Below are positions 1,917 through 59,209 of a DNA stretch of 64,000 nucleotides, piece after piece. Each line of letters opens with the position of its first letter. Positions within the stretch are counted from its first letter, which is position 1. A program made the position numbers and the translations under genes. This DNA comes from Macrostomum lignano. Its lineage: Eukaryota. The stretch is from positions 186,001 to 250,000 of the forward strand of contig NIVC01000104.1 of the NCBI GenBank assembly GCA_002269645.1, in the 5' to 3' direction. The notes under the pieces were generated by a model. It was not told the DNA's origin. It was given only the letters and a program-made list of their open reading frames with translations, and did not search any database.

Positions 1917-4731
1917 ATGGGTGCTGCCACCAGCTCAGTTGACAATGCGTCCAATTGTTGGAATCACTCCATTACGGAAGAGCCGCTCTACAAAGGCCTG
2001 GCAACGTTCCAAGCCGCCTACCGGCCAGTGCACGGGTACCTCTGCGCCGCATTGTGCGTATTCGGAGTCGCTGCCAACCTGGCCAGCATAGTTGTGCTTA
2101 CTCGGCGCACAATGGTTTCGTCCGTCAACGTTATCTTAATTGCCGTGGCTGTTGCCGATATGTTTACAATGTTTTTCTACTTTTTCCACTTGCTACACTT
2201 CACTGTCATGTCGCCAGCTGTGGGGCTTCACCAGCCGCACACGCTGTCCTATCCGTGGATACTATATTCTCTGTTCACTATCAGTGTGGTGAGTATAGGC
2301 GCTTGTTTTATGTTTTATGGTTGAAGGGGACTGTAGCCTTGTGGTTAGAGCGTCGGACTGACGACTGAAAGGGTTCGATTCCCGACCCACTCGGAACAAT
2401 TGTTGTCCTTGAGAAAGATTTTAACTCTGCATTGCTTCGGTTCACCCAGCTGTAAAATGGGTACCAGCATTATATGGGGTAATTGAGGCTGTGTGTAGCG
2501 ACCCCCCAATCCTTGGACTGAACAGCCGTACGCAGCCTTCAGATGCGTCGCACAATAGTTGCGGGTGAGCTTTCGGTTGCTCATCTGCCCATTAAGGGAG
2601 GTATAATCGATTATTATATTATTGCTCATTATTTATGGCCAGTATAGTCAATACTCTCCGCTCAGACATTAGAAAATATCATAGTAGCACATTGCCTTCC
2701 CAAGTACATGTACGGCTCGTAAGTAAATCAGCTCAAATAAAATTCTGTACAAATAAAAAAAAGCTACTACAGAAACTGGGCAACAAAACACTGGGTTGAC
2801 AGTTTTTCGTCGTCTGGCCATGCCTGCGACTTCAATCGGCAGGTGGGTGGACTTTTGTCTGGATAAACTGGCCCGGGTTCTATTAGCAAAGTGCCTCAGC
2901 AGGTCCCAGCAAAGATGGACCGCGGCTAAACTATTGGTACACTGCAGCCCGGAACTAGTTTTAGCTGGGAAAGCTGAAAATGTGCGAAAAGACATCCACA
3001 AAGGCTGGATTTTTACAGGGGGTGGATCAGGGCTGGCTTTGGGTCGAGCGCAGATATTGCAGCAAGCGGGCAAGCAGTATGCAGGTTGCAGAGCTGTGCG
3101 CATAATTCTGCTTCGTAGGATTAGAAGAAACACAGCCCTATGCGTCTGCGCTATGACAAATCATTTTCGCACTGAAATGTGAAAATGATACCCTTAGCTG
3201 CTATCTGTTCCATCCATCATTATACGTAGTGTAAGACCCATTTCTTTATGTTTCTCGGCAGCAACTTCGGCGTTAAAAAAAGCGCATATTCGCAAACGGA
3301 ATCGTCCGGAATGCGAAATAATTGCCGCAGATGTTTTGCACGACACAATTTATTTGCTTTGAACAATAAAGAAATTAATAGTTAACATTGGAAATCCATT
3401 AGAATCCCCAGTGGGTTGTATTGTTACTTTCGCGATGAATTGGTTGACTGGGGTCTTTTACATCATCGATGATCGATAGAATCTCGTAGCTTTGCAGACT
3501 TACGCTTGAGATTTAAAAAATGTCAGTCATCCTGTGCTTCTTGTGATTTTTTTCATCCTGAATTTGGACGCAGGATGATAAAAAAGCACCCTGCTTTTTC
3601 CAAACTGCTTGGTAACATATAATTTAAGCTTCAAAATTCTGTAATTCATCTTTTTTGAATGATCAATAAGTTTCTAACTATTCGGATTCGCTGGATTTGA
3701 AGACTTCCATCAATATCCGATCAAGGACCACTAGAAGCTACTCGTGTCAAATTTGAATAATCTGTAAGCAAAATCAACAGTCTTCTGCAACTTCTGCGGG
3801 TCAGGGAGGTTAAGAAATGTAAAGAGTAGAGTAGAGATGTCGGTACATTTTTCATCCTGGTTTTTAACTAGCGCAGTGACTCTGACGCTTGTAAAAACCC
3901 AGAAGTTGTCTACTCGCATTCATTTACTACTCGCCTTCTCTGTCACAGGTTCTGGTTCTTCACACAATAGCCAGCTGGTTAACCGTGACTCTGGCCATAT
4001 TTCGCTATCTGTACATTGCCCTGCCAACCAGAGGCGTTACCCTGGCCAGCATCAAGAATGCGTACATCAGCATCGCCGGGATCACGATCGTTTTGACGCT
4101 TAGCACGGCGCCGAACTACCTGATGAACGAGGCCGCATACTGCATATCCGCTGATCATGACAACGCAACAGTCTACTTTATCAGCACACCGGCTTCACTG
4201 CCAAAAGCTCTGGTAATGTCCAACTACTGGACTATCGCCATTGCCTACAAAATCTTGCCGTGCGGACTGCTGTCTCTGATGACCGTGCTGCTCATCTCGC
4301 AGCTGTCCAAGGCGGCCAAGAGGCGCAGGATGCTACTAAACAAAGCCCAAGCGGGCGAAGCGTCCAGACGAGAGCAGCGCAACGATCGGAGGGAACAGCG
4401 CACAACTAGGATGCTGCTGGCTATCGTGATAATCTTCTGGGTGACTGAACTGCCGCAAGGCGTCATGTCGTTGATGTGTTTTATCATGGCCTCCTTTCAA
4501 AAGAATGTGTACGAACCGCTCGGTGACGTTCTAGACCTGCTTTCGCTGGTGAATAATAGCTGTAACTTCGTGCTGTACACCTCCATGTCGAAGCAGTTTC
4601 GAGACACGTTCGCGCAGATATTCATATCGCCCTGGTGGCAGCGAGGGGGCGGTCAGGCCCAGCGGACCCTTGAGTTGGAGGAGCACATTGAGCTAAATGA
4701 AAACAACTCGAACAGAGTTGAAGAAAACTGA
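1917..4731 (+). CDS. Class A peptide GPCR, myosuppressin/FMRFamide/sex-peptide-receptor-like; 2 exons, 384 aa
   Basis: Exons 1917-2288 (donor GTGAGT) and 3949-4731 (acceptor ctctgtcacAG), phase 0. The splice joins TM2 to TM3 as FTISV|VLVLHTIASWLTVTLAIFRY. Other motifs: TM1 GVAANLASIVVLTRR, TM6 RTTRMLLAIVIIFWVTELPQG, TM7 NNSCNFVLYTSMSKQFRDTF. Confidence 0.9.
2326..2630 (+). mobile_element. tRNA-derived CORE-like SINE, family A, copy 1 (in GPCR intron)
   Basis: A-box-like TAGCCTTGTGGTTAGAGCG and B-box GGTTCGATTCCC, then the CORE-like block GTCCTTGAGAAAGATTTTAACTCTGCATTGC...CAGCTGTAAAATGGGTACC and an AT-rich tail. Homologous to 5441-5700 and 15885-16190. Confidence 0.75.
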
Positions 4732-18692: not shown

Positions 18693-21600
18693 TCAGATCA
18701 TGAAAGGCACAGGTCCACTGTAGGCTAACGCAATGGCAAACGACACCTTGCGCCTTTGACGAAATTCTTCTTTTCGCAACGAGTTCTCGGGCACTCGAAG
18801 CACCCAGCAGTCAAGTTCTTCGCAGACCACTCGATCGGTGTCGTTCAGGTAGCCAGTGAATGTTCTATAGCGAGTCTCGTTCAGGATGTACTTTTGTTGC
18901 TCTTCGAACGAGCGTCGTCTCGGTAGGTAAATCAAAGCTTTCAAGTTATCACCTGTGCCGAGAACAAGTCGGGGCACGTTTCGTCCAGGAAACGTCTTGG
19001 AGCTTCCCTGATGGCACGGATCGTCCCGTTTCGTCAGGCGATCGCACCTTTCCATCAGCTGCTTGGCCTCCTGCAGATGTTCTTTTCGCTTTGGATCCGT
19101 TGGCTTCCGAGAGAGCGCAGAGGCCAGATAGAACGCTCCGTGTATGAAGTTGGCAATGACGTCAGTAGTGAACTTCGTTCGCCAATCGGCAGCAAGTTGA
19201 ATGCCCCGTTCTAGCACGTCCTTTGTAGGTCGAGACAAGATAGTTAGCACACAAGCTTCCAAGTAAGTACGCGACAGCTTCGATTTGCACTGCAGCAAAA
19301 TCTCTAAAAGTGACTCAGAGTCCTTCGCATTCACTCCTTTTAGTCGCCAGACGCGATCCCACATAAGTCGCGCCAGCAGCTTGTTATCATCGGACTCATA
19401 AATATCCCATAGAGCCGAATCCTTAGATGCCTTCTTGCTCTGGGTGTACACATCCACAATCGTCCACGCATAGGCATTGTCCTTGATGTCTGTTCGAAGC
19501 TTCACGCTGCTTGCATTGATGGCCGATTGAGAGAAGCGATAGCGGCTGATAAATTCTTCTTTTGCATCATTTAGTTTTCCCATATCCTTTTCGGTTAGCG
19601 TTTCCGAGTCCACTTCGCCTTCTTCATGCATCTTCTCCAGGTTTAAAACATTCTCAATTATTTTCTGATGTGCTTCTCTAGCAACACAGAAGCAGTCGTT
19701 TTCAATCTCCTGAAAGTAAATTTCGCTGTCAGAGTGACACTCAGTTTCGAAGAAACGATTTAGCAGTATGCGCTGCGCCTGAATTTCGTAAACAAACGGG
19801 TGCGCTTTGTAAACGAAATCTCCAGTTGACTTTGCGGGAACTCTTTTTTGAATCTTCTTGCACAGGCGAATACTTTCGACAGCCCACGCCTGAGCCTCTT
19901 GAAAAGATATCTCTGGACCGGAGCTCACGCGACAGTTAATGAGGTGAGCGGATAAACCAAGGACTACATCATCAGTGCAAGTTGTGTCCGAGAAGAATGT
20001 CGCATCTTCAGTTATGTCCAATGCCTTACGGACAAAAACGATAGATTTTGTATGATCCTTCTGGTGGTATGCAACATAGCGAGCAAAGTGGACCAGCGTG
20101 TGAGACTTTGTTTCTGGAAAAGCATTTGCTAGTCTCGTGAATATGCGCTCAATTTCTTCCAATGGAAGGTTCTCGTGAAGAGTCATGAAGAAGTCAGTTA
20201 ACTTAGGATGTTTTGTCCTTTTCTGGCAAGAAATCAACCTTCGTACCAGGTAGGTCAAGCAGGAAAGCAGAGAGTCGGGTCCTTCTTCACCCATTTTGCA
20301 CAGACTGCTCACAAACATTCTGACTTGTTCTCCTTCTCGCTCGATAGGACTGATATCTTCAAAAAGATATTCAAGAATTTTCTCGCCGACAATCGATATT
20401 GGGGCCAACCCCCATCCTTTCCGCATTCTTTTCACAGTTAATAGATAACGCTGTTCTTCCAAGTGTTCCAACACCTGTAAAGGATCCTTCTGTTCTGGAG
20501 GAAGGTCCAGAAATTTGGCGGCTATCGATAAGTTCAAAGATGAGTGCGTGAAGTACTTCGTCAGGCAGGCAAAGCGCAGAAGAGAATTCTTTTTGTTTTC
20601 ACAATCCTCTAGAAGAGACTGAATAAAAACGTTAATCTTCACATAATCCTTTCTAAAGTGCCAGACGCCGAAAAGGAACGGTGTTCGATCAGTTTCCTTT
20701 TCGACTTTGTCCGTCAACTTGCGATTCTCATCGCCTCCGGATTCCATGTAGATTTTTGTGAATGCATTTGCCTCGTCTGGGCTAAGTTTTGCCGTCAAAA
20801 CTGGAATCTCAAAGTAGCACCGTTTCCTGTTAGTTTCTTTATTGGACTGAACTTGCTCCACGCAAACGGCAACAAATCTTGGCGCAGAAACGCGCCTGTT
20901 CAACTCTGACGCAAACGCATGAACAGATGAGTGTGGGAATTCCTTAGAGTCGAACAGCACTAGGACAGGTAGCTCTGTCTTCTTGTGCAGGGTACAAATA
21001 CCTTCAGACACTTCCTGCATTCGATCGAAGCACTTCACTTCAATGCAAGGGTACTCTTTACGAAGACGCCAAAGCACGATTTTGGCGATCGTTGACGCAC
21101 CAGATACTGCCTCGTGGGGTAAGCGAATGATCTGCCTGACGTTGGTGTCCCAGTTTGTGAAAGAACGGTTGCCGCAATGGCTAAGAGATTTGCTCACTTT
21201 TTCTTTCTGCGTCTCAACTTGTCTTCGCTCAACATATATTCCACTGTTTTGGTATCGTAGCTCATCATGCAGATGGAGCATCTCCTTTGTGAGTTCGTTT
21301 CCAGCTAAGAACTGACGGCGAACTTGATTAGTGTACTGTTCCTTCTGATCGAGGGCCTTGCTGAGGTACTTGGACTGACCAGACTGGATGTGGTAAAGCC
21401 GGAGGTACGGTTTAAACGTCGCGAACTGCTCGCGAGCCAAAGATATTTGGCCGTGCTTTCCAGGCAGCTCGTATTGTTTCAGTGCAACCATTGAAGGATA
21501 AATAGACTCAAATAGATGGCATAACTGATTCACAGGAACGAGAATCAAGTGTTCTTGCAGACTTTGATTCTTATAGACTTTCCTTAGCTGATCGCTTAGG

Positions 21601-23819
21601 CCGGATAGCACTTGCTGCTGAACGTACATGGTATACGCTTTAAAGGCATCTGCATTGTTAGACTCGGACAAGAATGCCTCTCTTAGATGGCACTCAGCGT
21701 CTGTGGGACTCATTGGTAAATTTTCAATTTCCAAAAATGAGGTGCAGAGGCATAGAGACGTACACAACACTGGTCTAGGACGCTGGTTCTTCTCAAATAT
21801 GGCATTTAGCAAGTAGGTTCTCAGCAGCTTCTTGAGCTTGTGTTCATTAGTCGGTCCTGCTTTGCCTGTCTCGCTGCATCCCATCACTTGAACGTAAATT
21901 GTTCGATGACCGCTTTGGCACTCTTCAATGTCGTGGGTCTGCAGAGTGGAAAGGTCCTCCCACGACTTTACCGTGCTCAGTCGACCTAACTTGCGCATTT
22001 CTTCTTCCATAAAGGTGAAGATGCCTCCTTCCTTGCGGCTATCCCTATCGAAATCCAAAACTACGTCCCATGTGCCTCGACCAAGCGACTTTGCAAGAGT
22101 TTCACGCTCTCTAGCGTTCTTTGCTGCAGAAAACTTTGTGATTATCAAGACTCGGAATGCGTTTTTGGCTTGAATAATGTCTTCTTTCGCCCAGTACAGC
22201 TGGCTTACGTCACATTTTGATTCAAATTGAGAATAGACCAAGTTTCTAAAGTCGTTATCCCAGTTACACTCTTGCACGTTCTGTGCATCGCTTCTTGCAT
22301 ACAACAGTCGCTTTGATTGTTTTTCGGATTTGCTTTTTCGAGAAGCGTCGGCAGTCGACTTCGCACGGCAGTCCCTGAACACAGCCGGACCGGACTCACC
22401 TCTAGGGATCTCTAGCATGCCGTAGCTACCTGCTGGAATAGTGAGTCCCATGTTCTTCAGACAAAGCTCAGAATCAAAACGGATTAGGTGAAAATAACAT
22501 TTCACAAATGGAGTGGTATTGTTTCGAAAACAATCCTGGATCTCTTCCTCGCCCGGGTACTTTGAAAGAGGAGCAAATTCGTGCTTCTTGTCACCAGTCT
22601 TTCTATCAAGCTCCTTCACGCCATAAACAATGTAGGAGCTGAAACAGGACTTGTCAGTCAAGCTGGGCTCCCTCAGGTCCGGGTGAAGTCCGTTGTACAT
22701 GGAACAGGCGGTCTTGAGCATACGGAACTTCCAGTCATTAGACTCGTTCACGGATGTTTTGAAATCGACGTGGGTCGACTCCTTGATATTCTTGCATAGC
22801 AAGTACACAAAAAACTTTTGGTCCCGTGAAAGCTCGTGAAATGCCTTCTCGCTTCGAAGCGGTGGATCTGTAGTTTGAGTTTGAAAAAACGTTTGTCCAG
22901 AATAGTTGAACTATTCATTCATTAATTCAACACAAAAAACTTACGCTTTTTTAACATGACGCTATCAAAATTGTCAGTGTTGATGTTGTTGTCCTCTGCA
23001 TCTGAATTCTCCAGCTGATCCAGCAGCTCGAAACCTATTATTTTTATTTAAAGATTCTATAAATCAGCGCCTGTCTTTTATATCGGAAAACCCTGACACT
23101 GTAGCTCGTATCGTCACTTACGGTTCGTAGAGTTAAGCGAAGGCGTCGTGTGTTTTTCCGTGTGCTGTGCTGGATAGTCTTCAATTTCGTCAGTGGCAGG
23201 TTTCACCAGCAAGAGTCCACTTTGGCCATCTCTCTGTTGGCTTGATGTACTTGTACTTAAATCCCTGTCAGAAGAGGGATTCTGATTTTCACTTTTTGAA
23301 CCCAGAAAGCTCGACGTTCCGGAGACGTTCCTACGGAGCTCATGGCTTTCCACATTGGTGTTGCTCTCCGTTGTAGTCTGCTTGTCGGCGTCAAGTTGAC
23401 TGATGTCACTTTGGTTTGGCTGCTAGAAAAAGCACTGGTTATTTAGGCTGGTTAAGAAGCGCATCTAAGATTAGATATGGTGATTTGACGATAACTTACC
23501 GGTGTTGCTTTGTTCTTGTTTTTTTTCTTTCTCTTGCGTTTTTTGCTTGAAGCATCGGCAGACTGCGGAGGAGGGAGAGGTAAGAGTTGGAGTCATTTGT
23601 ACTGTTGACTCGTAGTTTCCGTATTACTCTGTATTACATTTCGTCTGATTCATCTGATTCACCTCTAAAAAGGTTGAAATCGTAAACAATGTCTACGGGT
23701 TTTATACTCACCGGCGTTAAATTTGGACTATGCCAGCAGAACCATACCAGCACAAGTACGCCAACTAATATTGCAATGGCGATTGTTAATGGATTAACCG
23801 ATTGCAAGTATGGGTGCAT
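18693..23819 (-). CDS. SAMD9: SAMD9/SAMD9L-like protein (AlbA_2, SIR2-like, STAND NTPase, helical repeats, OB) with predicted N-terminal TM anchor; 5 exons, 1578 aa
   Basis: Exons (minus) 23712-23819, 23500-23562, 23122-23422, 22945-23034, 18693-22867, phase-consistent. Family motifs: ESTHVDFK...YIVYGVKE (AlbA_2), WDVVLDFD, IIRLPHEAVSGASTIAKIVLWRLRKEYPC (cf. SAMD9 [29 protein letters not shown]), LPVLVLFD, and C-terminal KVSFAIALAYSGPVPFMI*. The symbol denotes family, not orthology. The four 5' exons are less certain than the large exon. Confidence 0.85.
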
Positions 23820-25649: not shown

Positions 25650-30017
<4,368 letters not shown>

Positions 30018-30882: not shown

Positions 30883-33800
30883 CTAAACAGCGTCGCCCTC
30901 GCCCTCGCCTTCTTCTTCGTAATCGTCTTCGCCCTCGTTATCGTCTTCGCCCTCTGGCGGCTCCTCAATGAGATCTTCTTCGTCGGTAGTTTTCTTTGCC
31001 AGCGGGACGAACAGCCTGTCAAAGTCAATCTTGCCCACCTGTGGCGGCTCGCTCAGGCTCTTCTTGCCATCCTGCTCAGTTGGTTTTTTCTTCTCTGTCT
31101 TTGACAGTTTCGCCTGCCTAAGTCTGCGCCGCTGTAGAGAGCTCACGCCAGTCAGGTGATCGACCACTGGGTGAGGAACAAAGACGCCCATACGAAAAAA
31201 GTCTTCGCTCTCCCCTAAAATTTCGCCTTGAAGATCATCCTCATCATCGCTTTCTTCTTCGTCGTTGTCGGCATCGTCGGCGTAAGAAGCGTCGTTGCCC
31301 CCCGTTTTCCGTCCACGCTTGAGTTTCTCAATCCTGTCCTGCCGACGATGGGCCTCCAGCTCGGCGTGCCGGATCATCAACTCGTCGCAGACCTGATCGA
31401 CTGCGTAGGCAAGCTTACCGGCCTGGTTGACCGACTCGAGCTTCCAGTCTTGAAAGTTGAAGCCCAGCGCGATTAGCAAACCGAGACAGTAGACAAATAG
31501 GAATGTTCCGATAAAGACTGCAGCGGATCGAATGTATAAACTAGCCGGCAACGGGTCGTGCAAGCTGCGCACGAAAATTGGAAACGATTCGTTCTCGAAG
31601 CACCGGGCTGGTTGGCAGCGACGGTGCTGGCGTCGGAATCCTTCGCAGAATCGGCCGTCTGAGTCGGCAGACTGGCAAGGTCGCTGGCGAAACTGGCCGC
31701 CGATGTTGCCGCAGGCCGGGAAGCAGTCGCTCCACTCGGACCAGTCAGACAGCGTTGAAAATATCTCGCGGCAGTCTTGCCCGGCGTAGCCTTCGTCGCA
31801 TTTGCACTCGACATCGCGCTCGCGGCCAACGCAGACGCCGTTGCCGCAGACTTTGCTCTGGCATTTTCTTGCCGCGAGTTTTGCCGCGGCGCCTCTGCCT
31901 TTGCCGCGACTGCCTCGACAATTGGGGAAGTTGGACACGGTTTTGTTTTCGAAGTAGGGCATGAAGCACGTGCACATGTAGGTGTCGCCGTCCGTCGTGC
32001 ACTTGTTGCCAATGTCGGCCTGTTGAGTTGAGATTAGGAGACTTAGTAGCCTAACAATCTGATAAATTATTTACAAAGCGTTTATTGGAAAAAAATGCAA
32101 CAGACATAACCACGTAAAAATGCAGGAAAAGTCTGACCTATTATTCACTGGTGCACTCTAACCTAATGAAACATGCAAGTCGTTCTGAAGAGCTTGTACG
32201 GCAAACTACCTAGGTTACGTTAGGCTTAGTCTTTTGAGCTTTATTTAGCCATGCTTCTGTTAAGTACTTATCCTAAGATCCTAAGACCTAAAAAGTAGAT
32301 CCTCGGAACACTAGAAGTTACGCTTGTATTCGGATGTAACACTTGAGTACCATGGACAATTCATTAGAAGGCCTAAATTTCATTTAAACGGGCACTTGAA
32401 ACGCGATAGAAACTTAGCACTCAATTGTCAATAATCTCACATTTTGGGCTTTCAAATGCATATAAAATTGGTATGCGTTTGTTTAGAGCTTGATCCATGA
32501 GGCAAAAATTCGTCCATTCAGTGCCTAAAAATGTAGATTTTCTATCTCTCTATCTAATACATGGTTTAGCGAGATAGGACTTTCAAAAAAACTTCCTCAG
32601 AAAGCGAGTGTTGTGTCCGAACGCAACCGTAACTTCATTTTGATCTTTTCATAGATCTCCGGCTAATTTAGCCAATTACCTGACAAAGATCGCGCCCAGT
32701 CTCTGCACTGTGCGGCGTCACTCGTTCCGTGCACCTGTCGGCAATATTGAAACACTTAGACACCGGATCGAAGCCGTGATAGCAGTTGCACATCACATTG
32801 GCCGATTCGTTATTCTTAGATACAACGGTGCACGTTCTTGTCGTCTCTAATTTGCAATCGATGCAACCAGGCGGCCAATAGACTTCTATTCTGCTATGCT
32901 CCCGGCAGGACTCCATCACTATCGTTGATAGGTGACTAAATCCTTTGTCCAGCAATGGAACGAATGGCTCAAAGTTGGCCAGTCGCGTTATAACCCGGTG
33001 CACCGCTGGCCGCCCGTTGCACACGCACATTGGCACCAAGTAGCCTTGCGGCACGTTCTTCACTGTCCAGCCGTTTTTAATGTAACGAGGCACCGAGCTC
33101 TGTGGGCGAAGAGTTTTTTAATTGACAATTCAGTTCATACTGTCTACAGATAAAGCGACACTTAAAAAACCCGGACTTCTTGAAGATTAGTCCAGTGAAA
33201 GAGTGACGTCTTGGTAGAATTATAAATCTGTGGTTGTTGGGATCTTTGATGGTGTTGATTTTAAGTTTGGGAAATATTTTTCTGTAGCTTTAATCTATCT
33301 CCATGTACATGTAGCTTAGAACCAACAACGGATACAGGCCGGGAATTGGAATTTGGGTTTTTGGTGGGGAGAATTATTAAACAGGGGGGGGGAGAATGTA
33401 AACTCTCTAGGACCAACTGACCCGGAAAAAGACTCTGCATGCTCTACCATATCGCCATAACCTTCACCTTCAAGACACTCCTATAGCACAAAGATAGATC
33501 TCACGTGACCGCTCCGCACGCCCCAGGCAAAGGTGCCATTGTCGCCTTGGCAGAGTCCATTGAATATTTGATAGGCCACCCGTGGCAAATCGATGTTGCT
33601 CACAGCCAACTTCGACGAGAGTCGATTTGAGTCCTGCACCAGGTCAATACTGGGCACTGCCGGCAGATCGCTTTCTTGGCTCTTGTTGAGAACTAAAGTG
33701 TCTTTCGTAGAGTCATAATACCCGGAGACTCCGTACTTGGTCCGGTAGATGCGCAGCTGCTCGTACAGCATGAACTTGCCAAAAGTGACCTCTTTGTAAG

Positions 33801-35536: not shown

Positions 35537-48014
<12,478 letters not shown>

Positions 48015-50049: not shown

Positions 50050-50648
<599 letters not shown>

Positions 50649-50790
50649 GGCAGAAATTCTCTGGCCTGAAAACATCAGAAAGATCCGGTCTTGGCCACGA
50701 GGAAGGTGCACCTGTCCTGAGTAAAGGCAGGCCGGGGCATTCACGGATGAAGTGCTCCACATTCTCGACACCGGAGAGGCAGAATGGGCG
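50649..50790 (-). mobile_element. 3'-terminal fragment of a non-LTR retrotransposon
   Basis: The minus frame reads [20 protein letters not shown], resembling the C-terminal CxxC...EHxxxxC motif of LINE ORF2, and runs directly into (GACA)n. Confidence 0.55.
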
Positions 50791-51194
50791 TTATACCTGT
50801 GATAAATCACTTAATAACTTCTTACCTTTTCGAAACATACTTCAAAAATTCAGCCGTCGATGTTTTCCTTAGAACTTCGAGGCTCTCTAGCGTCTATATA
50901 TGTTATCGAGTCAGCATCAGAATTTAGGCTTAAATAAGTTATAATCAATGAATATCTGCTCAGATAAGCCCTAGGTACTTACGCCTACTGTACTGTTGGC
51001 GACTTGGGAAACTGGTAAATCAGACAAAGCTTATAGTTCTGCTGAGAAACAGAGTTCATGTTGTTATATTTTGTTAAACTGATCAGTCAATAATTATGCG
51101 GTCAGGAATCACAGTTCAGAGTGCATACGTCAGTGCCAGCAAGTCTCAAGCTCCGATCAAGTGAGCTGGATGTCAGGTGTGGCTGCGGTAGCAT

Positions 51195-51383
51195 TTAACC
51201 AAGCCTAACCCTGACCCTGACGAACTTCTTGGCGTGGTCGACGGCCTCCTCCGACATGCTGGACTCGTCCACGTTGGACAGAGCCTCCAGAACGGCCATG
51301 GCCTCAGCCTTCTCCTCCTGGGTGGGCACGGCGACAGCCAGGGCTGCGCACAGCAAAAGTCCGAGAGCGAGTTGCCACTTCAT
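51195..51383 (-). CDS. Secreted prepropeptide (signal + acidic spacer + KK + FVRVRVRL-G), copy 1; 62 aa
   Basis: Intronless ORF MKWQLALGLLLCAALAVA-VPTQEEKAEAMAVLEALSNVDESSMSEEAVDHA-KK-FVRVRVRLG*, with start context GCAATCATG. A second copy is at 54057. Confidence 0.85.
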   Translation of the reverse strand: MKWQLALGLLLCAALAVAVPTQEEKAEAMAVLEALSNVDESSMSEEAVDHAKKFVRVRVRLG

Positions 51384-52029
51384 GATTGCTTGAGTAGGAT
51401 CGATTCGAGTGTTTGAGCTGAGTCGAGTCTGAGCTTGTTATCTTGAGCAGTCGGCAGATGCGAATTTATGCACATCGGATTGGCACGTGTTTCCGGTCGG
51501 AGCGGCGACGTTGGTTGAGTTGAAAGCCTTCATGTGAGAAGGGCGGAGCAGAGACTGCATGGCTTGCGTGTCTGTGAAGATTAGGCAGCATTGTTTGCTT
51601 CATGACAGCTAAGCAATCAAAAGTGTGTCTCACCGAGTTTTGTCAGTGCAAGTGTATGCAGCTGAATAGTCTATTTGACTCTTATGACCTTTTATGACTT
51701 TGATTGACACTTTATCGACTCTGAAGTTCTCATCGTTTTGGGCCATTGGCGAGAATTACCCGAAAAGCCACAGTTCGGTCAGCTGCGAGCTGTCAGATTC
51801 AGTCAGCCTCAATCTTCGATGAAGCGGCTTTGATCTCAGATCTAGACAATGTAATCCCTGATAGATGCCCGATACGCTCGTAAGATCTAGCTCGTGCTTA
51901 CAGGAAAGCTGTTTAAGTTATTCTCCCGACCTAGTTAGTCTTCGATTGCCAAAAACGTGTGAGCCACAGGGCTCAAAATAGAACAAGCGTAACAGTGATG
52001 AACTGCTCAACTGGAGCCTTTATTTTTTA

Positions 52030-52795
52030 GCTGGTTGCCACATCGCCAATGAAGCTACTTGTCACCTTCCGTTCACTGCAAAACCAACACTTCGACGATT
52101 GCGATCAAACCCTGGAGATAGACGTCTCGGCTGAAGTGAGCCGATGCCTTCAACCATTGGAGACAATTGCTGAAGTTAATAAGTGGGAGGAGGACGTCCT
52201 GAAGACACGCATTCATAGATCAGCTCGGTAAAAAAGCCTTTAACCTGCTGGCCTTACTCCCCACAAACCACAAGACAAGACTTTCGACGAGCTGAACGAA
52301 CTTCTAAAGAATCAAAGTCAGGGCTGGTCTATCGGTACGTCTTTCACTGTCGGAAGCAAGAGGATAGCGAAGACACACCTTACTCCAGAAGGCTTCATCA
52401 GGCGGTCGAGAGCTTCGAATTGACAGGCCTGAACGATAGGCTCCGCCACCAGTTTTTATTTGGCTTGGCCATCAAGTAGATTGTCAGAAAGCTCCTTAAG
52501 GAAAAATTGAAGGACATCACTTGGGAGAAGGTGAAGTCTGGTCAGTGCATGTGAAGCTGTCCCGTGCGGCGAAAGAGAAATGAAAGGTATTGACACTTTG
52601 TTAGTCAATAAGACAACTCCACAATGCAAGCTGGATGCGCGACACAAGGATCACAAAGCATTCCAGTCTCATGGGAAGTTAAATCAATGGAACTTTGGCA
52701 GGGACGGAAGAGAACGGGAAGTGGTGTCGAGTGCACCCAGACTACGCTGGACCTTTCAAGGGACAAGCACCTACTTTAACTCGTTGACGCCTAAA
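52030..52795 (+). mobile_element. Decayed Ty3/gypsy gag-like remnant
   Basis: Fragments such as LNDRLRHQFLFGLA..IVRKLLKEKLKDITWEK resemble gypsy gag (DRLRDQF..GL...LL.E..LTW.K). Multiple stops and frameshifts. Confidence 0.5.
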
Positions 52796-53250
52796 GTAAA
52801 TGGGCCGAGGGACATGTTACATGCTGCGCAGTCGACTACATCGGCAGAAACACTCCAGCAGTAAATGGGCCGATGGACATGTTACATGCTGTGCAGTCGA
52901 CTACATCGGCAGAAACACTCCGGCAGTAAATGGGCCGAGGGACATGTTACATGCTGCGCAGTCGACTACATCGGCAGAAACACTCCGGCAGTAAATGGGC
53001 CGAGGGACATGTTACATGCTGCGCAGTCGACTACATCGGCAGAAATACTCCAGCAGTAAATGGGCCGAGGGACATGTTACATGCTGCGCAGTCGACTACA
53101 TCGGCAGAAACACTCCGGAAAAAATGGGCCGAGGGACATGTTACATGCTGCGCAGTCGACTACATCGGCAGAAACCCTCCGGCAGTAAATGGGCCGATGG
53201 ACATGTTACATGCTGCGCTGTCGAATACATCCGCAGAAACACTCCGGCGC
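52796..53250. repeat. 65-bp tandem repeat, 7 units
   Basis: GTAAATGGGCCGAGGGACATGTTACATGCTGCGCAGTCGACTACATCGGCAGAAACACTCCGGCA at 52796, 52861, 52926, 52991, 53056, 53121, 53186. Confidence 0.95.
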
Positions 53251-54056
53251 TTCCGGAGAACATTTTACTATTATGAATTCTTGGACGGTACCAAGGACTA
53301 TTGGGTAGGAGTGTTAGGCGTCTCATAAAATATCTAGCTCATAAATAAAGCTGCTTGTCACCTTCCGTTCATTGCAAAACTGACAATCCCCAATCTAAAA
53401 TGTCTTACTCAGGTCCAAAACACGCTGGGAAACTTCCGGCCGCACAAAATACAGATAATGAAGCTCAGAGCCCGGGCTGTCGACGAACCGTAGAATCGTG
53501 CCTGTTCTTGCAGGTATGGCACCATACCTCAGCGTGAAATGCGTCAACTACTCGTAGCTGATCCAGGGAGTTAGTCAGAGCTTCCTGTGTCTTAGCGCAA
53601 TACTGCTTGACGGTGTCGACCACTGCCTTACGCAACGCCACTATTTTGCGCTCGGGAGCACTAGACTTGCCCGCGACGCATTTTTCCTGCATTATACTTT
53701 TTCCCCAATGCTTTGTAGCCGTTAATAAGGAGATTTAGCAAATCAAAACGTTCCAGTAGTAACTGAGTTACAATAAATTATTATCTTCAAATAAGCACAA
53801 GTATCAGTTCACTACGCAAAGACTGGACTGGCGACTGGCCGAAATTGAAAATGTTCAATAAGACAAAGCTTAAGGTGCTGCTGAGATCTTAATCTGTGTT
53901 CTCGATGGTATATTTTGTAAAACGGATCAGTCAATACAACCGTGATTTTGCGGTCGGGATTCAAAGTTCAAAGGTCATTTGTGAGTTGTCGTCAGTGTCA
54001 GCGAGTCTCAAGCTCCGATCAAGTAAGCTGGATCTCAGGTGTGGCTATGGTAGCAT

Positions 54057-54245
54057 TTAACCAAGCCTAACCCTGACCCTGACGAACTTCTTGGCGTGGT
54101 CAACGGCCTCCTCCGACATGCTGGACTCGTCCACGTTGGACAGAGCCTCCAGAACGGCCATGGCCTCAGCCTTCTCCTCCTGGGTGGGCACGGCGACAGC
54201 CAGGGCTGCGCACAGCAAAAGTCCGAGAGCGAGTTGCCACTTCAT
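54057..54245 (-). CDS. Secreted prepropeptide FVRVRVRL-G, copy 2; 62 aa
   Basis: Protein identical to copy 1. The only CDS difference is synonymous (Val GTC/GTT). Confidence 0.85.
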   Translation of the reverse strand: MKWQLALGLLLCAALAVAVPTQEEKAEAMAVLEALSNVDESSMSEEAVDHAKKFVRVRVRLG

Positions 54246-55309
54246 GATTGCTTGAGTCGGATCGATTCGAGTGTTTGAGCTGAGTCGAGTCTGAGCTTGT
54301 TATCTTGAGCAGTCGGCAGATGCGAATTTATGCACATCGGATTGGCACGTGTTTCCGGTCGGAGCGGCGACGTTGGTTGAGTTGAAAGCCTTCATGTGAG
54401 CAGGGCGGAGCAGAGACTGCATGGCTTGCTTGTCTGTGAAGATTAGGCAGAATTGGTTTGCTTCATGACAGCTAAGCAATCAAAAGTGTGTCTCACAGAG
54501 TTTTCTCAGTGCAAGTGTATGCAGCTGAATAGTCTATTTGACTCTTATGACCTTTTTATGACTTTGATTGACACTTCGCTAGCTTAATGACAGTCTCTCA
54601 GGTAATTGTGACTAACGGGGTGTGGCATAAATGATGTCAAATGAGCAGTCAAAAAGGAATTTTATTCCGGCTCAGGGATATTTTTGAACTCCACTCCCAA
54701 ACACTAGCGATTGCGCTCACTGGAATGAACAGAGATGGCAACAAAGGCATCCTTGGCAGTTTAAATGACAGTTCAGTGCAACAGTTCAGATACTGTTTTA
54801 CTGCTTGACAATTGCCTTGAGAAGTACAGAGTGCAGTCTATTGGTGGTCGATGCCGAACGCCTTTCAGAAGGCCCTGGGACTGACTCATTGGAGACAAAC
54901 TTGGGTCTGATTTGGCATTGGCACTGACCTCTCCCGGGATGCCCCAGGTCCTGCACACCAAAGATAAACGCATGCAACTACTAAAACAGGTCAATGTGTG
55001 TGTAAATTTAGCTCTGTTCACGGTTCCTTCGGCCACTTGGTCGGGATCAGCACTGTCCGATGCGGCTTGAAATTCGCTGATGGAGCTGCAAACAAACTTC
55101 TTGATAGTTCTGAATTTGTTTCCACGGCATCCATTTCTCGACTTAACTGATTATTTTTGACCTTCATCAATATCAGAGTTTCATCTTTGTCAGATCTGGG
55201 GAGGGTGGCAGAATTTTGAGACTGGCTGGAGAGAGCGAAATCTCGAGGAATTGTACCACACTACCACAATACAACTGGTCTAATCGGCACATCGCAGTCT
55301 TACCCTGAG

Positions 55310-55316
55310 TCTGTCC

Positions 55317-55352
<36 letters not shown>

Positions 55353-55960
55353 TAGTGTCTGTCTGTCTGTCTGTCTTTTTGTCTGTCCAGTCCTGGTCTT
55401 CTAGATTCTGGCCTTTGCGGCAAAGGTAGCTCGAGAACGAATCTCTTTGTTGGTCGTGGTCATTTGCCGCGCCGTGGTTTCAGCCTCAGCAGTCGCAGCA
55501 GCATCTCCAGGGAGCTCCGCCGCTGAACTGCTGGAGCCTCCACCGACCGTCCCGTCTGTTTGCTTCGAGGAGCCGGTTGCTTCAACACCCTTGATGGGCG
55601 CCCCCGCTTTGGCCCCCGCACCTTGGTTTCGATGGCTCCCGTTGGATATGCCAGCAGAGCCGGCCGATCCTTCGGACTGAAGCTGGGGTTTAGAAGGGTC
55701 CCCGTCCCTAGGTAAAGCTTTTTTATCCATAGTCGGTTCGAAGGCCATGATAAATGTTGGTGGGCTACCCTCGAAGGGGCGCAGTACCCTCTTTGCCGCT
55801 CCACCTGACCGGGCGGGCAGTAGGCCAAAATAACCCTAAAGGCTGGCCCGACATCAGGAGGGGGGCCGCTAGCGACCAGACTACTCCCCGGCCTTCCAGC
55901 CCATCGGCTAGGTCAAACACCTTAAGGCATTAGACACTACCACGGCTATCCAATGGTCAG
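55310..55960 (-). mobile_element. Probable internally deleted non-LTR element: GC-rich leader, ORF1-like start and (GACA)n tail
   Basis: Minus strand: GC-rich leader ~55760-55960, ORF 55401-55748 (MAFEPTMDKK..., low complexity, Ala/Gly/Ser-rich), then (GACA)n with CTAA variants like those at 50050-50648. Family assignment is inference. Confidence 0.4.
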
Positions 55961-56149
55961 CAGACTCGTATTCACATAATTTCCCTGTTATCTCTGACCA
56001 AAACTTTCCATTTCTAACAGATAACGAATTCTTACCGTCCATTTCCAATCTACATTCTGCCAGCGGATCTTTTAACAGCACAGACCAATTATACTGAGCC
56101 TAATTTAGCAAAAACCCTCTCGATAGCTGACTCACACCTCCCTATTCTT

Positions 56150-59100
56150 TGTCGCGTATAAAGAACTACGCTCGTATGCCCCTAACAAATATACTCGGAA
56201 AACTGTTTTTGCTCGCTTGCTACTTTTCAACTAGCTACCACTCGCAAGCCGCTTCATTGGTGAGTCCGACGCAGCCATTTCGTGCAATGGCCCCAAAAAT
56301 CGACTCTGCTGTGTCCCCGTAGTTGCCCACGTTTTGGGCGGCCCAGCCTCGAGCCTGCTTTATCCAAGCCGAGGCTCAGTTTACCCAGAGAGGCATCACT
56401 CAGGACAAGACCAAGTACGCCCATCTGGTCGCAGCTCTTGACCAGCAGACAGCAGAGCGCCTCCTCGATGTGCTCGAGGCTCCTCCAGAGGCGAACAAGT
56501 AAAGAAGCTCAGCTAAAGGAGCGCCTCAATAGCACGTTCGATTTGACTCCTCAGCAGCGGGCCAGCCGCCTGCTCAGCATGCCCGGCCTTGGCGACCGGC
56601 GGCCGTCCGAGTTGATAGACGAGATGCTCGCCCTGCTGGAGAACCACCGCCCCTGCCTGCTGTTCGAGGAACTGTTCCGCCAACAGCTGCCACCGGAGGT
56701 ACGCATGGCCATGACAACTGTCAGTTTCGCGGACCCCCGGGCAGCAGCGCAGCAGGCGGACAAGCTCTGGGACAGCCGGCCGGCTGACCGACTTCCTGCG
56801 GCACCACCGCCTGCTGGTGGACCTGTCGCACCGACGCCACCTGGACGCCCGCTCGCTCGCTAGCGTGCACCTGCTGGACGGCGCGGGGCCCGGACTGCAG
56901 CTCGCCGCAGCCGCCGCTGCGGACCCATACAACCAGCTGCTGGCCGAGTTCCCCGCCCTCACCGAGCCCAGTTTCCAGCGGGCTGCGCCACGACACGTGT
57001 TGGAGCACCAAATCCCGACGCAGGGCCCGCCGGACAAGCTGGCGGTGGCCAAGGAGGAGTTCCGGCTCCTGGAGCAGCTCGGCATCGTGCGCCGGTCCAA
57101 CAGCCCGTGGTCCTCGCCGTTGCATATGGTGCCAAAGGCCTCTGGCGGCCCCGCGGCGACTTCAGGCGGCTCAACGATGCCATGGTGCCCGACCGCTACC
57201 CGGTGCCGCACATCCAGGACTTCTCAGCGCGCCTGGCCGGCTGCTCGATCTTCTCCAAGATCGACCTGGTCCGCGGCTACCACCAGGTACCCGTGGCCAC
57301 AGTTGACGTGCCAAGACCGCAGTCACCACCCCGTTTGGCCTCTTCTCGAGTTCCTGCGAATGCTGTTCGGCCTCAAGAACGCCGCCCAGGCCTTCCAGCG
57401 GCTGGTGTACTCCGTCTGCCAAGACCTGGACTTCGTTTTCGACTACATCGACGACTTCCTGGTCGCCAGCCGCAGCCCGCAGCAGCACCTGGAGCACCTG
57501 TGGACGCTGTTCCAGCGCCTGGCCGACAACGGCCTTATCGTCAATCCGGCAAAGTGTGGGTTCGGCCGCAGCGAGATCGACTTCTTCGGCCACCGGATCA
57601 GCGCCCAAGGGGCCGTGCCGCTGCCCGCTAAAGTCGCCAGCGGCACGCTAAGGGCCTGCAGGAGTTCGCCGGCATGGTGAATTTCTACCACCGCTTCGTG
57701 CCGCGCGCCGCCCAGCTGCTGCGCCTCATCCATGCGGCCATGGCCGGCAAGGAGAAGTTCGTCCGGTGGACGCCCGAGCTGACCGCCGCTTTCGACGGAG
57801 CGAAGCGGGCGCTGGCCTCTGCCGCCATGCTGGCGCACCCGCGGCCATACGACGCCTCCGATACCGCAGTCCATGCGGCGCTCGAGCAGCGGGTTGGCGG
57901 CGCCTGACAGCCGTTTGCCTTCTTCAGCCGGCAGCTCCGCCCGCCCGAGCAGAAGTACAGCGCGTTCGACCGCGAGCTGCTCGCCTTGTACCTGGCGGCG
58001 GTTCGCTATTTCCTCGAGGGCCGCACATTCGCTGCTTTCACGGACTACAAGCCACTGGTCACCGCCATGTCCAAGATGTCCGACCCGTGATCCGCCCGGC
58101 AGCAGCGCCACCTGGCCTACGTGTCCAAGTTCACCACGGACATCCAGCACGTGGCGGGCAAGGACAACTCGGTCGCAGACGCGCTGTCCCGCTGCACGGT
58201 CTCTTTGGTGCAGTGGATTTTGCGGCAATGGCCCAGGCACAGGCGGCCGATACGGCCAGTCAGGCCGACGCCAGCATACAACTAGAGCCCGCTGCAGTTC
58301 AGCCCCGGTGTTGCCCTGCTCTGCGACATCTCCACGGGCCGGTCGCGCCCGTTAGTGCCACCGGATTTCCGCCGCAACGTCTTCGACGCCATCCACGGCC
58401 TCGCCCACCCGTCCATCCGCAGCACGCGGCGCCTCGTGGCCGCCAAGTTCGTAGGGGGCCGGCATGAACAAGGACGTCAGCCAGTGGGCCCGGTCCTGCG
58501 TCGCTTGTCAGACGGCCACGGTGCAGCGGCACTTCTCCGCCCCGGTTGGCAATATCCGCGTCCCGGACCAGCGCTTCGCCCAGGTGCACGTCAACCTGGT
58601 GGGGCCGCTGCCTCATGGGGCGGCTGGCCGGACCAGCCTGGGTCAGCGAGCTGCCCTGGGTGCTGCTTGGCATCCGGACGGCCCCTAAGGAGGACCTGCC
58701 GGCCTCGTCGGCCGAGCTGGTCTACGGTGCGCCCCTCTGCGTGCCCGGCGAGTGCCTGCAGCCCAGCCCGCCGCCCGGCGACCACAACCAGTTCCTCGCC
58801 CGGCTCCGCGGTGCCGTCCAGGCATTTCGGCCGACGCTGACGTCCCGTCACGGCAGCCGCCCCACAGCCTGGCCCGCCGCCCTCGACGCCTGCCAGTTCG
58901 TCTTAATCCGGCGCGACGGCCACCGCCCTCCTCTGCAGCGACCTTACGACGGCCCGTTCAAGGTCCTCGAGCGGGACGCCAAAGCTTTCCTGCTGGACCT
59001 GGGCACTCGCCGCGACCAGGTGTCAGTCGAGAGGCTGAAGCCAGTCGTCATCGACGCGGACGACCCAGTCCCGACGCCGGTTTTGCGACCAAGAACTACG

Positions 59101-59209
59101 TATAAAGAATATAAAGAACTACGCTCGTATGCCCCTAACAGATGTACTCGGAAAACTGTTTTTGCTCGCTTGCTACTTTTCAACTAGCTACAGCTCGCAA
59201 GCCGCTTCA
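56150..59209 (+). mobile_element. Degenerate Ty3/gypsy (Mag-like) LTR retrotransposon
   Basis: 100-bp direct repeats 56157-56256 and 59110-59209 (4 mismatches) end in CA, with PBS-like TTGGTGAG after the first. Gag *LPTFW..P..CFIQAEAQF..RGIT; RT SPWSSPLHMVPK and YIDDFLVAS; RNase H DASD...YSAFDRELLA...FTDYKPL; integrase HGLAHP...CVACQ and QRPYDGPFKVL. Many stops and frameshifts. Confidence 0.92.

Follow-up and report, generated by a model that had tools for sequence, protein, structure and literature searches.

A tandem pair of prepropeptide genes in Macrostomum lignano belongs to a large family with a hypervariable C-terminal peptide

Two gene copies encode one prepropeptide

The window analyzed here is a 64,000-nucleotide stretch of the genome of the flatworm Macrostomum lignano (assembly GCA_002269645.1, contig NIVC01000104.1, positions 186,001 to 250,000 of the forward strand). 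Its subject is a pair of genes for a prepropeptide that is predicted to release the eight-residue peptide FVRVRVRL. The open reading frame (ORF) listing places the pair on the minus strand at 51195-51383 and 54057-54245 of the window, 62 codons each, with a start-to-start distance of 2862 bp. Both ORFs translate to MKWQLALGLLLCAALAVAVPTQEEKAEAMAVLEALSNVDESSMSEEAVDHAKKFVRVRVRLG with no difference between them. The sole difference between the two coding sequences (CDS) is a synonymous Val codon, GTC or GTT, which appears on the plus strand as G at window position 51240 and A at 54102. A first-pass annotation of this DNA had reported two intronless ORFs with an identical protein at this spacing, and the ORF listing and the alignment bear it out.

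Segment-wise translation gave an 18-amino-acid signal peptide, a 33-amino-acid spacer with nine Asp or Glu residues, KK, FVRVRVRL, Gly and a TAA stop codon, exactly as the precursor had been parsed before. The predicted signal peptide, called by eye from the -3/-1 rule and the hydrophobic core, begins with MK and has A-V-A at positions -3 to -1. Neither ORF contains an intron. The gene models in GenBank agree with this, as their products terminate at the identical ...RLG stop. Another reading takes GTCAGG or GTTAGG in the codons of the mature peptide as a 5' splice site and FVRVRVRL as intron read-through. It was rejected because the paralogues all keep the frame to the Gly and stop, with indels that are multiples of 3 or 6, and because the transcript-based GenBank products end in ...RLG. 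The antisense ORFs at 51229-51393 and 51234-51416 of the plus strand, and their copies, were also rejected since the conservation pattern and the indel phase match the minus-strand frame.

A repeat search and pairwise alignment showed that both ORFs lie inside a duplicated unit of about 700 bp (units A and B, Table 1). The two units are 97-98% identical from 330 nt 5' of the ATG through the CDS, and the 3' flank is more diverged and carries indels. No further copies of the family were found within the window beyond these two. The 2.1 kb separating the units is not duplicated and contains a minisatellite and degenerate mobile-element-like sequence. The minisatellite, which sits between the gene copies at window positions 52795-53248, has a 65-bp unit present in seven copies with 94% matches. 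It is flanked by a 42-nt direct repeat (52048-52089 and 53344-53385, 1296 bp apart), and the stop-riddled ORFs beside it were taken for mobile-element remnants by appearance only.

The genes are one locus of a large Macrostomum family

The first protein search, with homologues at E = 1e-36 to 1e-12, found 15 paralogues in M. lignano that share the signal peptide, an acidic spacer and KK or KKK and have variable alternating tails. Two wider searches, an exhaustive one with a HMMER profile against 1.84 billion representatives and a profile and word search, enlarged the family to at least 32 protein clusters at 90% identity. The first-pass annotation had proposed a search for paralogues with variable mature regions, and those found have C-terminal peptides of 6-37 residues. 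Its description of a duplicated prepropeptide was correct as to the duplication and understated the rest, since the two copies make up a single locus in a large family whose members GenBank already lists as hypothetical proteins.

All matches came from M. lignano except one 929-bp Logan contig and one weak plant match (E = 1.7e-5), and the latter is regarded as spurious. No orthologue in another flatworm was present among the 1.84 billion representatives and, as far as the databases searched can tell, the family is restricted to Macrostomum. All the named homologues are M. lignano "hypothetical" or "uncharacterized" proteins with one misnamed exception, P0005 (73 amino acids), which UniRef calls a "SERPIN domain-containing protein". 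We rejected this name because no serpin-sized domain is present, and judged it a mis-annotation of an older model that is truncated or mis-spliced. The distant members share the signal M[KR]WQ[LFI][AV]LGLLLC, an acidic propiece and a Lys site, while their C-terminal peptides differ widely. One gene model, P0001 (85 amino acids), has an internal 23-amino-acid duplication in its propiece.

Family loci form tandem clusters in both orientations, with 4-5 genes plus fragments per 10-20 kb. Four genes and a 3' fragment occupy 10 kb at locus L001, five genes and a fragment occupy 20 kb at L006, and L007 contains a degenerate family copy. Pseudogene remnants were seen at 4398-4466 of L001, near 2973 of L006 and from 345 of L007. 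One remnant is a 3' fragment encoding ...QKAVDNAKKWLRVRARVRIG whose 5' half is gone; in the degenerate remnant, the ATG is gone and the signal and propiece are frame-shifted. These remnants are signs of birth-and-death turnover. One L007 gene, which starts at 8913 on the minus strand, continues beyond the usual Gly as WLRVRARVRVG-SRRRSRSG.

The same two-gene arrangement was found on a second M. lignano contig, NIVC01002033.1 (L002), which is collinear with window positions 51062-54586 at 91-95% identity. Its genes encode FVRARVRVRL-G and FVRVRARIRL-G. Since the arrangement is shared, the tandem pair is older than the split between the two contigs. The identity of the two window copies suggests recent homogenization, or that the window pair has retained one form. 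The minisatellite region is also collinear with L002.

The first-pass annotation recognized no named family in the protein, and no Pfam family scored above threshold for it. Sub-threshold matches to Lock_Gag1-like (16.6 bits, cutoff 27) and to ATP19 were put down to chance on low-complexity acidic sequence. P0001 scored 27.1 bits for Lock_Gag1-like at the same cutoff through the two copies of its duplicated acidic segment, and this was also taken as chance. No paper containing any family peptide string or gene identifier was found in the literature searched, nothing relevant was found on Macrostomum antimicrobial peptides or neuropeptides, and the supplements of M. lignano papers held no family identifiers, sequences or primers. 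The genes are therefore already deposited in GenBank; what appears to be undescribed is that they form a family, how it is built and what it is likely to do.

Divergence is concentrated in the mature peptide

The reading frame was intact in all 17 distinct paralogous CDS, and every indel was a multiple of 3. Mean pairwise nucleotide identity, calculated from a 12-paralogue alignment of the gene plus flanks, was 0.77 for positions -100 to -1. It was highest for the signal (0.96), followed by the propiece (0.80), and fell to 0.32 for the mature region and about 0.35 for the 3' untranslated region (UTR). Pooled Nei-Gojobori estimates of nonsynonymous (dN) and synonymous (dS) divergence over the 17 CDS were dN 0.027 and dS 0.098 for the signal, 0.19 and 0.21 for the propiece, and 0.43 and 0.60 for the mature region. 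The gradients in dN and in identity therefore place most of the divergence in the mature peptide.

Tails within the subfamily include FVRVRARIRLG, FIRARVRVRLG, WLRVRARVRIG, FVRVHVRFG, IFRVRARIHIG, IFRVRVRIG, IFRVRVHIG and FIHIHFG. Across the family, the C-terminal peptide ranges from 6 to 37 residues and is mostly Arg- or His-rich. Distant members end in GFHVHFH-G, FHLHLP-GK, WRRRRRFRWRKAIRVAGKVAKAVL, WRIKSACKIFRRLLHLARKCYAKK-G, FRIRIRWGRVARNVLRLL-GK, WRIRFRRIRIRWRRVYRVVRTAYRIYRHLPFP-GK, WRMRHRIHFRWRRVYGVVHRVYRGYRRIIC-GKR, LFFRRRRRRHYFVYHSRRRYYRRRYHRRHHVHIVAYH-G or WFSRWFRITYRRRGGERRYLRSYFRL-G, and the same prepro region also carries long Arg-rich peptides of 24-37 residues, those of 26-37 residues being rich in Arg and Tyr. 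The cassette of signal and propiece in M. lignano P0021 and P0035 bears a non-cationic Tyr-rich decapeptide, AVYKPNYYKD or AVYKPNYNKD, which suggests that the cassette has been reused for other cargo. Both decapeptides are reminiscent of the Tyr/Lys-rich repeats of adhesive proteins.

An imperfect hexanucleotide repeat, (GTY AGG)n, encodes the mature peptide and reads GTCAGG GTCAGG GTTAGG in the window copies. The L002 copies are longer by one 6-nt unit, which suggests that length variants may be generated by slippage of the hexanucleotide repeat.

This conservation pattern bears on the possibility that the product is a neuropeptide or peptide hormone acting at a receptor, perhaps derived from the flatworm FVR[I/L]amide NPP-1. 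The precursor does have a site for basic cleavage and a signal for amidation. With FVR at its start and a Leu-amide at its end, the peptide has a superficial likeness to GFVRIamide, which is localized to neurons in schistosomes (PMC6797213; PMC13026224). Both peptides come from flatworms, and FVRVRVRL, like GFVRIamide, would have an aliphatic C-terminal amide and be released at a basic site. Some neuron-derived peptides of Hydra are also antimicrobial (PMC10945409). However, NPP-1 is neuronal and conserved across flatworms, whereas the Macrostomum peptide is hypervariable and restricted to Macrostomum. It is the least conserved part of a precursor whose signal and propiece are conserved, the reverse of neuropeptide precursors, in which the spacer varies and the peptide is kept, and the same prepro region carries the unrelated Arg-rich peptides of 24-37 residues. 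There is only one C-terminal copy per precursor, and the gene has dozens of paralogues without an orthologue in the other flatworms covered by the profile search. A single-copy neuropeptide, which the first-pass annotation had offered as its alternative, is disfavored by this hypervariability, and we consider a receptor ligand very unlikely.

Processing signals, charge balance and peptide chemistry

K52 and K53 are invariant in the subfamily alignment (A2), and the last Lys is invariant in the superfamily alignment (A3). The terminal Gly, G62, is also invariant in A2. In 22 of 25 family members, the C-terminus is G, GK or GKR even though the sequence before it varies, and we therefore read the Gly as an amidation signal. 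The conservation is strong indirect evidence for this reading in light of what is established about peptidylglycine alpha-amidating enzymes, for which a C-terminal Gly is the amide donor.

The net charges of propiece and peptide vary together, more negative propieces going with more positive peptides (Spearman -0.85, n = 25), in a correlation that ignores the shared ancestry of the genes. The pairs range from about -5/0 (FIHIHF) to -15/+14 (a 37-mer); the window gene has -8 in the propiece and +3 from Arg in the peptide. Neutralization of charge by a propiece is known for the precursors of cationic defense peptides.

The possibility that no peptide is released, so that the functional product is a 44-amino-acid protein made of an acidic helix and a basic tail, or that the genes are drifting with little function, was weighed against these constraints. 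The propiece has a dN/dS of about 0.9, the clusters contain pseudogene fragments and degenerate copies, and cleavage at KK is only a prediction. On the other hand, at least 25 divergent members have kept the frame and the hydrophobic/basic pattern as well as the KK site and the terminal Gly. Conservation is also strong in the promoter module and TATA box described below, and transcript-derived gene models exist. Overall, an unreleased or drifting product seems highly improbable to us.

The hydrophobic moment of FVRVRVRL is 1.34 when calculated for beta geometry (180 degrees), compared to 0.49 for alpha geometry (100 degrees). All 14 short paralogues examined have two hydrophobic residues followed by (basic-hydrophobic)n, with a moment at or near the maximum for their composition. 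The longer members are non-alternating, and some of them score better as a helix or show no regular pattern. AlphaFold2, run on the precursor with the subfamily alignment, gave a low-confidence all-helical model, with a predicted local distance difference test (pLDDT) score of 64 and a predicted template modeling (pTM) score of 0.28.

The strict alternation in the 14 short paralogues, with a beta moment far above the alpha moment, is also what would be expected of a self-assembling material. In such a case, the alternating Arg or His peptides would form cross-beta fibrils or gels with polyanionic mucus or Zn2+, with a role in mucus, rhabdite-like secretions, adhesion, or metal-binding or catalytic assemblies. 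Designed (VR)n hairpins do form gels: VRVRVRVRV-DPPT-RVRVRVRV-NH2 (PEP8R), which is written C-terminally amidated, self-assembles (PMC12940918). Ac-LHLHLRL-NH2 and Ac-IHIHIQI-NH2 are Zn-dependent catalytic amyloids (PMC10008563), and the predicted paralogous peptides FHLHLP-NH2, FIHIHF-NH2 and GFHVHFH-NH2 come near them in hydrophobic/His alternation, length and amide. This likeness concerns the paralogues and not the window genes, and the natural peptides would have free N-termini. The longer members, which do not alternate, speak against such a role, and a charge of +4 on eight residues would be expected to oppose assembly unless counter-ions are present. We view a self-assembling or metal-binding material as quite unlikely to be the primary function.

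Transcript models, promoter and untranslated regions

Both copies have gene models on contig NIVC01000104.1, annotated as "hypothetical protein" with "partial" products of 77 and 79 amino acids. These products begin inside the 5'UTR; in the 79-amino-acid product (P0002), AQTRLSSNTRIDPTQAI ahead of the Met is translated 5'UTR. This upstream start of the deposited models is why an exact look-up of the 62-amino-acid product found no database record, and the product was reached through P0002 instead. The M. lignano annotation is a genome-guided assembly of RNA-seq transcripts whose ends were defined by experiment (PMC5730564), and genes of this type are therefore transcribed.

Each gene is preceded by a TATA-like box, GCATAAAT, that is identical in all aligned paralogues and lies 30-37 nt 5' of the annotated model start. 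This placement would fit each copy having its own promoter. The box follows a module, CGGAAACACGTGCCAATCC, made of a GGAA core, a CACGTG E-box and CCAAT. The module is near-invariant across 19 paralogue upstream regions and can still be recognized in the distant Logan member (L010). It matches the window twice where 0.01 matches were expected, and in the fetched loci it occurs about 110 nt 5' of family genes and nowhere else, which implies that the family is co-regulated. In the form GGAAACACGTGCCAAT, present at every family gene examined (L001-L009, L011 and the window pair), the E-box is palindromic, and conservation of the module exceeds that of the CDS except for the signal. We speculate that the module could point to the regulating transcription factor, such as a basic helix-loop-helix leucine zipper (bHLH-Zip) or ETS-type factor. 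The 3'UTR motif contains a poly(A)-signal-like AATATA hexamer, which may serve as the poly(A) signal.

A candidate host-defense precursor

The anatomy of the genes, their family and how it is conserved, the compensation of charge and the gene models based on transcripts are all direct observations. A frozen cassette of promoter, signal and propiece with a conserved KK and Gly, a hypervariable Arg- or His-rich cargo matched in charge, tandem clusters and restriction to one taxon point together to a repertoire of defense or toxin effectors. This is the signature of defense and toxin precursors and not that of a neuropeptide, and the antimicrobial reading is therefore the best supported. The first-pass annotation had seen the layout of a host-defense precursor in a single protein; the same layout now recurs across dozens of paralogues with a hypervariable mature peptide, charge compensation and tandem clustering. 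From the sequence, we lean towards a prepropeptide that is processed to FVRVRVRL-NH2 and acts as a membrane-active host-defense peptide.

We infer the cleavage site, amidation, structure, producing cell type and activity as follows. The signal peptide would be removed first, and the anionic propiece would neutralize the cationic tail during storage. A proprotein convertase would then cleave behind the conserved Lys-Lys, and the terminal Gly would become the C-terminal amide. The resulting FVRVRVRL-NH2 would carry +4, counting the N-terminus, and may form an amphipathic beta-strand with faces V/V/V/L and F/R/R/R. Its most likely role would be that of a host-defense effector, antimicrobial or membrane-lytic, that the worm secretes into the gut or at a barrier surface. 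The tandemly clustered family evolves by birth and death, with the promoter, signal and propiece in common and the mature peptide hypervariable, and part of the variation would come from the gain and loss of 6-nt (Val/Ala-Arg) repeat units.

Several observations weigh against this interpretation. One paralogue has EK and another has LK in place of KK, and KK itself is rarer as a convertase site than KR or RR. The correlation of charges is subject to the effect of ancestry given above. FIHIHF, GFHVHFH and FHLHLP gain no charge from Lys or Arg, and AVYKPNYYKD is altogether non-cationic, so the family need not share one function. The mature-region dN/dS of 0.71, from a short region whose alignment is uncertain because of repeats, is below 1, and positive selection is therefore not demonstrated. 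Such selection is frequent in families of host-defense peptides but is not obligatory. RNA-seq reads are unable to prove that both copies are expressed because the copies are near-identical. Finally, fast evolution of small secreted proteins fits reproductive proteins, too.

This last point leads to a fast-evolving secretion of a non-immune gland, in which the prepro processing would be the same and the target different. The product could be a seminal-fluid, prostate, cement-gland or pharyngeal secretion, or it could act on prey (diatoms) or competitors as a toxin or lytic aid. The restriction to one taxon, the expansion in tandem, the coordinated promoters and the speed at which the secreted part diverges all fit. 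The M. lignano prostate is reported to have many small lineage-specific secreted transcripts (PMC5977470). The seminal-fluid screen yielded no family sequence in its text or in the supplements searched, a weak negative because those supplements list no sequences. Amphipathic peptides that are uniformly rich in Arg and matched by an anionic propiece are typical of membrane-active defense peptides, and a gland product of this kind seems unlikely.

A host-defense precursor can be compared with known systems. Anuran precursors of the preprodermaseptin type (temporins, brevinins and dermaseptins) resemble the Macrostomum family in having a signal, an acidic propiece and a C-terminal peptide, in frequent C-terminal amidation and in including very short members, such as the eight-residue temporin-SHf. 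They differ in that the frog site is KR and the Macrostomum site is KK, and in that frog peptides are mostly amphipathic helices while the short Macrostomum peptides are strictly alternating and beta-strand-like. The Pfam frog prepro (Brevenin) family had no match at E <= 10, and the exhaustive profile search returned no amphibian or other vertebrate protein. Since the two lineages belong to different phyla, the resemblance is convergent. In frog tripartite precursors, too, the signal is highly conserved and the active peptide is hypervariable (PMC10049141). The arminin and periculin families of Hydra are genus-restricted, clustered and bipartite in charge, and some of their paralogues appear to be silent or degenerate (PMC10945409). 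They are like the Macrostomum family in their taxon restriction, tandem paralogues and anionic/cationic layout behind a signal peptide. They share no homology with it, however, and Hydra peptides have about 30 amino acids or more and are often Cys-rich, whereas the short Macrostomum members have 6-10 residues and no Cys. Therefore, the family is not homologous to any known antimicrobial-peptide family and is probably a convergent new one with ultrashort, strictly alternating peptides.

The first-pass annotation had likened the mature peptide to arenicin and protegrin, a comparison that we replace. Arenicin and protegrin are disulfide-bonded hairpins. The synthetic 8-mer IRIKIRIK (IK8L), which is C-terminally amidated, has the same length and chemistry as FVRVRVRL, in that aliphatic residues alternate with cationic ones. 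Linear designs of this kind are closer, and IRIKIRIK is broadly bactericidal (PMC4330034). The designed 8-mers are synthetic, and the predicted FVRVRVRL is gene-encoded. The Macrostomum peptide also differs in starting with two hydrophobic residues (F-V or I-F), in having a hydrophobic end, and in carrying three charges per eight residues instead of four.

A broader proposal, which we put forward tentatively and with low confidence, covers both the Arg-type (FVRVRVRL-NH2) and the His-type (FIHIHF-NH2, GFHVHFH-NH2) members. They may all be amidated amphipathic beta-strand peptides of 6-10 residues that self-assemble on membranes, mucus or metal ions and are varied by hexanucleotide slippage, while the cassette of signal, propiece and promoter stays frozen. 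Macrostomum would then make, from genes, what designers have made as beta-sheet antimicrobials and as Zn-dependent catalytic amyloids.

Coordinates and other features of the window

The coordinates of the elements of both gene copies are given in Table 1.

Table 1. Elements of the two gene copies, in window coordinates; the limits of the duplicated units are approximate
Feature	Position	Strand	Basis
Duplicated gene unit A (promoter, 5'UTR, CDS, 3'UTR)	51008..51700	-	Repeat families D4, D5, D6, D8 and pairwise alignment
Copy A promoter module CGGAAACACGTGCCAATCC	51477..51495	-	Paralogue upstream comparison
Copy A TATA-like box GCATAAAT	51464..51471	-	Invariant among aligned paralogues
Copy A 5'UTR	51384..51434	-	GenBank model 5' end to ATG
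Copy A predicted signal peptide MKWQLALGLLLCAALAVA	51330..51383	-	Translation, paralogue comparison
Copy A acidic propiece, 33 amino acids, net charge -8	51231..51329	-	Translation
Copy A KK, putative processing site	51225..51230	-	K52 and K53 invariant in alignment A2
Copy A predicted mature peptide FVRVRVRL	51201..51224	-	Translation
Copy A terminal Gly, putative amide donor	51198..51200	-	G62 invariant in alignment A2
Copy A stop codon TAA	51195..51197	-	Translation
Copy A 3'UTR motif CAAAATATAAC	51063..51073	-	About 125 nt past stop; block CAAATATAAC kept in most paralogues
Duplicated gene unit B	53847..54575	-	Repeat search and pairwise alignment
Copy B promoter module	54339..54357	-	Paralogue upstream comparison
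Copy B TATA-like box	54326..54333	-	Paralogue alignment
Copy B 5'UTR	54246..54296	-	GenBank model
Copy B predicted signal peptide	54192..54245	-	Translation
Copy B acidic propiece	54093..54191	-	Translation
Copy B KK site	54087..54092	-	Translation
Copy B predicted mature peptide FVRVRVRL	54063..54086	-	Translation
Copy B terminal Gly and stop codon	54057..54062	-	Translation
Copy B 3'UTR motif CAAAATATACC	53907..53917	-	Paralogue alignment

Elsewhere in the window, ORF segments at 1887-2324 and 3985-4731 of the plus strand jointly match a rhodopsin-type G-protein-coupled receptor (Pfam 7TM_GPCR_Srw, 1.8e-25; 7tm_1) and are probably one peptide-receptor-like gene split by an intron. An unbroken ORF of 1371 amino acids at 18693-22808 (minus strand), read here as a large intronless gene, has a sub-threshold N-terminal match to Schlafen AlbA_2 (23.4 bits, cutoff 25.3). 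The ORF at 30883-31977 (minus strand, 364 amino acids) combines a thrombospondin type-1 domain with a C-terminal tail that is very acidic. A GC-rich block at about 56000-59200 (0.57-0.63 compared to about 0.45 elsewhere) contains a reverse-transcriptase domain (RVT_1, 3e-15) and long ORFs that overlap on both strands; it is a retroelement whose reading frames appear to be broken over several frames. Microsatellite or short-period arrays lie at 50052-50649, 45016-46041, 27807-28936 and 55309-55387. The arrays include short-period repeats of about 1 kb, read from the ORF translation only, and an array of about 1.1 kb with an apparent 24-nt period. A (TGTC)n array of about 600 bp lies immediately downstream of gene copy A. 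These repeat arrays give rise to spurious long ORFs.

Significance

To our knowledge, the effector peptides of flatworm innate immunity are almost unknown. M. lignano is transgenic and tractable by RNA interference, and the shared promoter cassette could serve for reporter lines and family-wide knock-down in work on flatworms and microbes. If active, the predicted peptides would be among the shortest gene-encoded antimicrobials. They would also be a rare natural case of the linear alternating beta-strand design that chemists found independently in IRIKIRIK, (VR)n and LHLHLRL. The family offers a clean case of a conserved prepro cassette with hypervariable cargo and a visible candidate mechanism, repeat slippage, which makes it useful for studies of how effector repertoires diversify.

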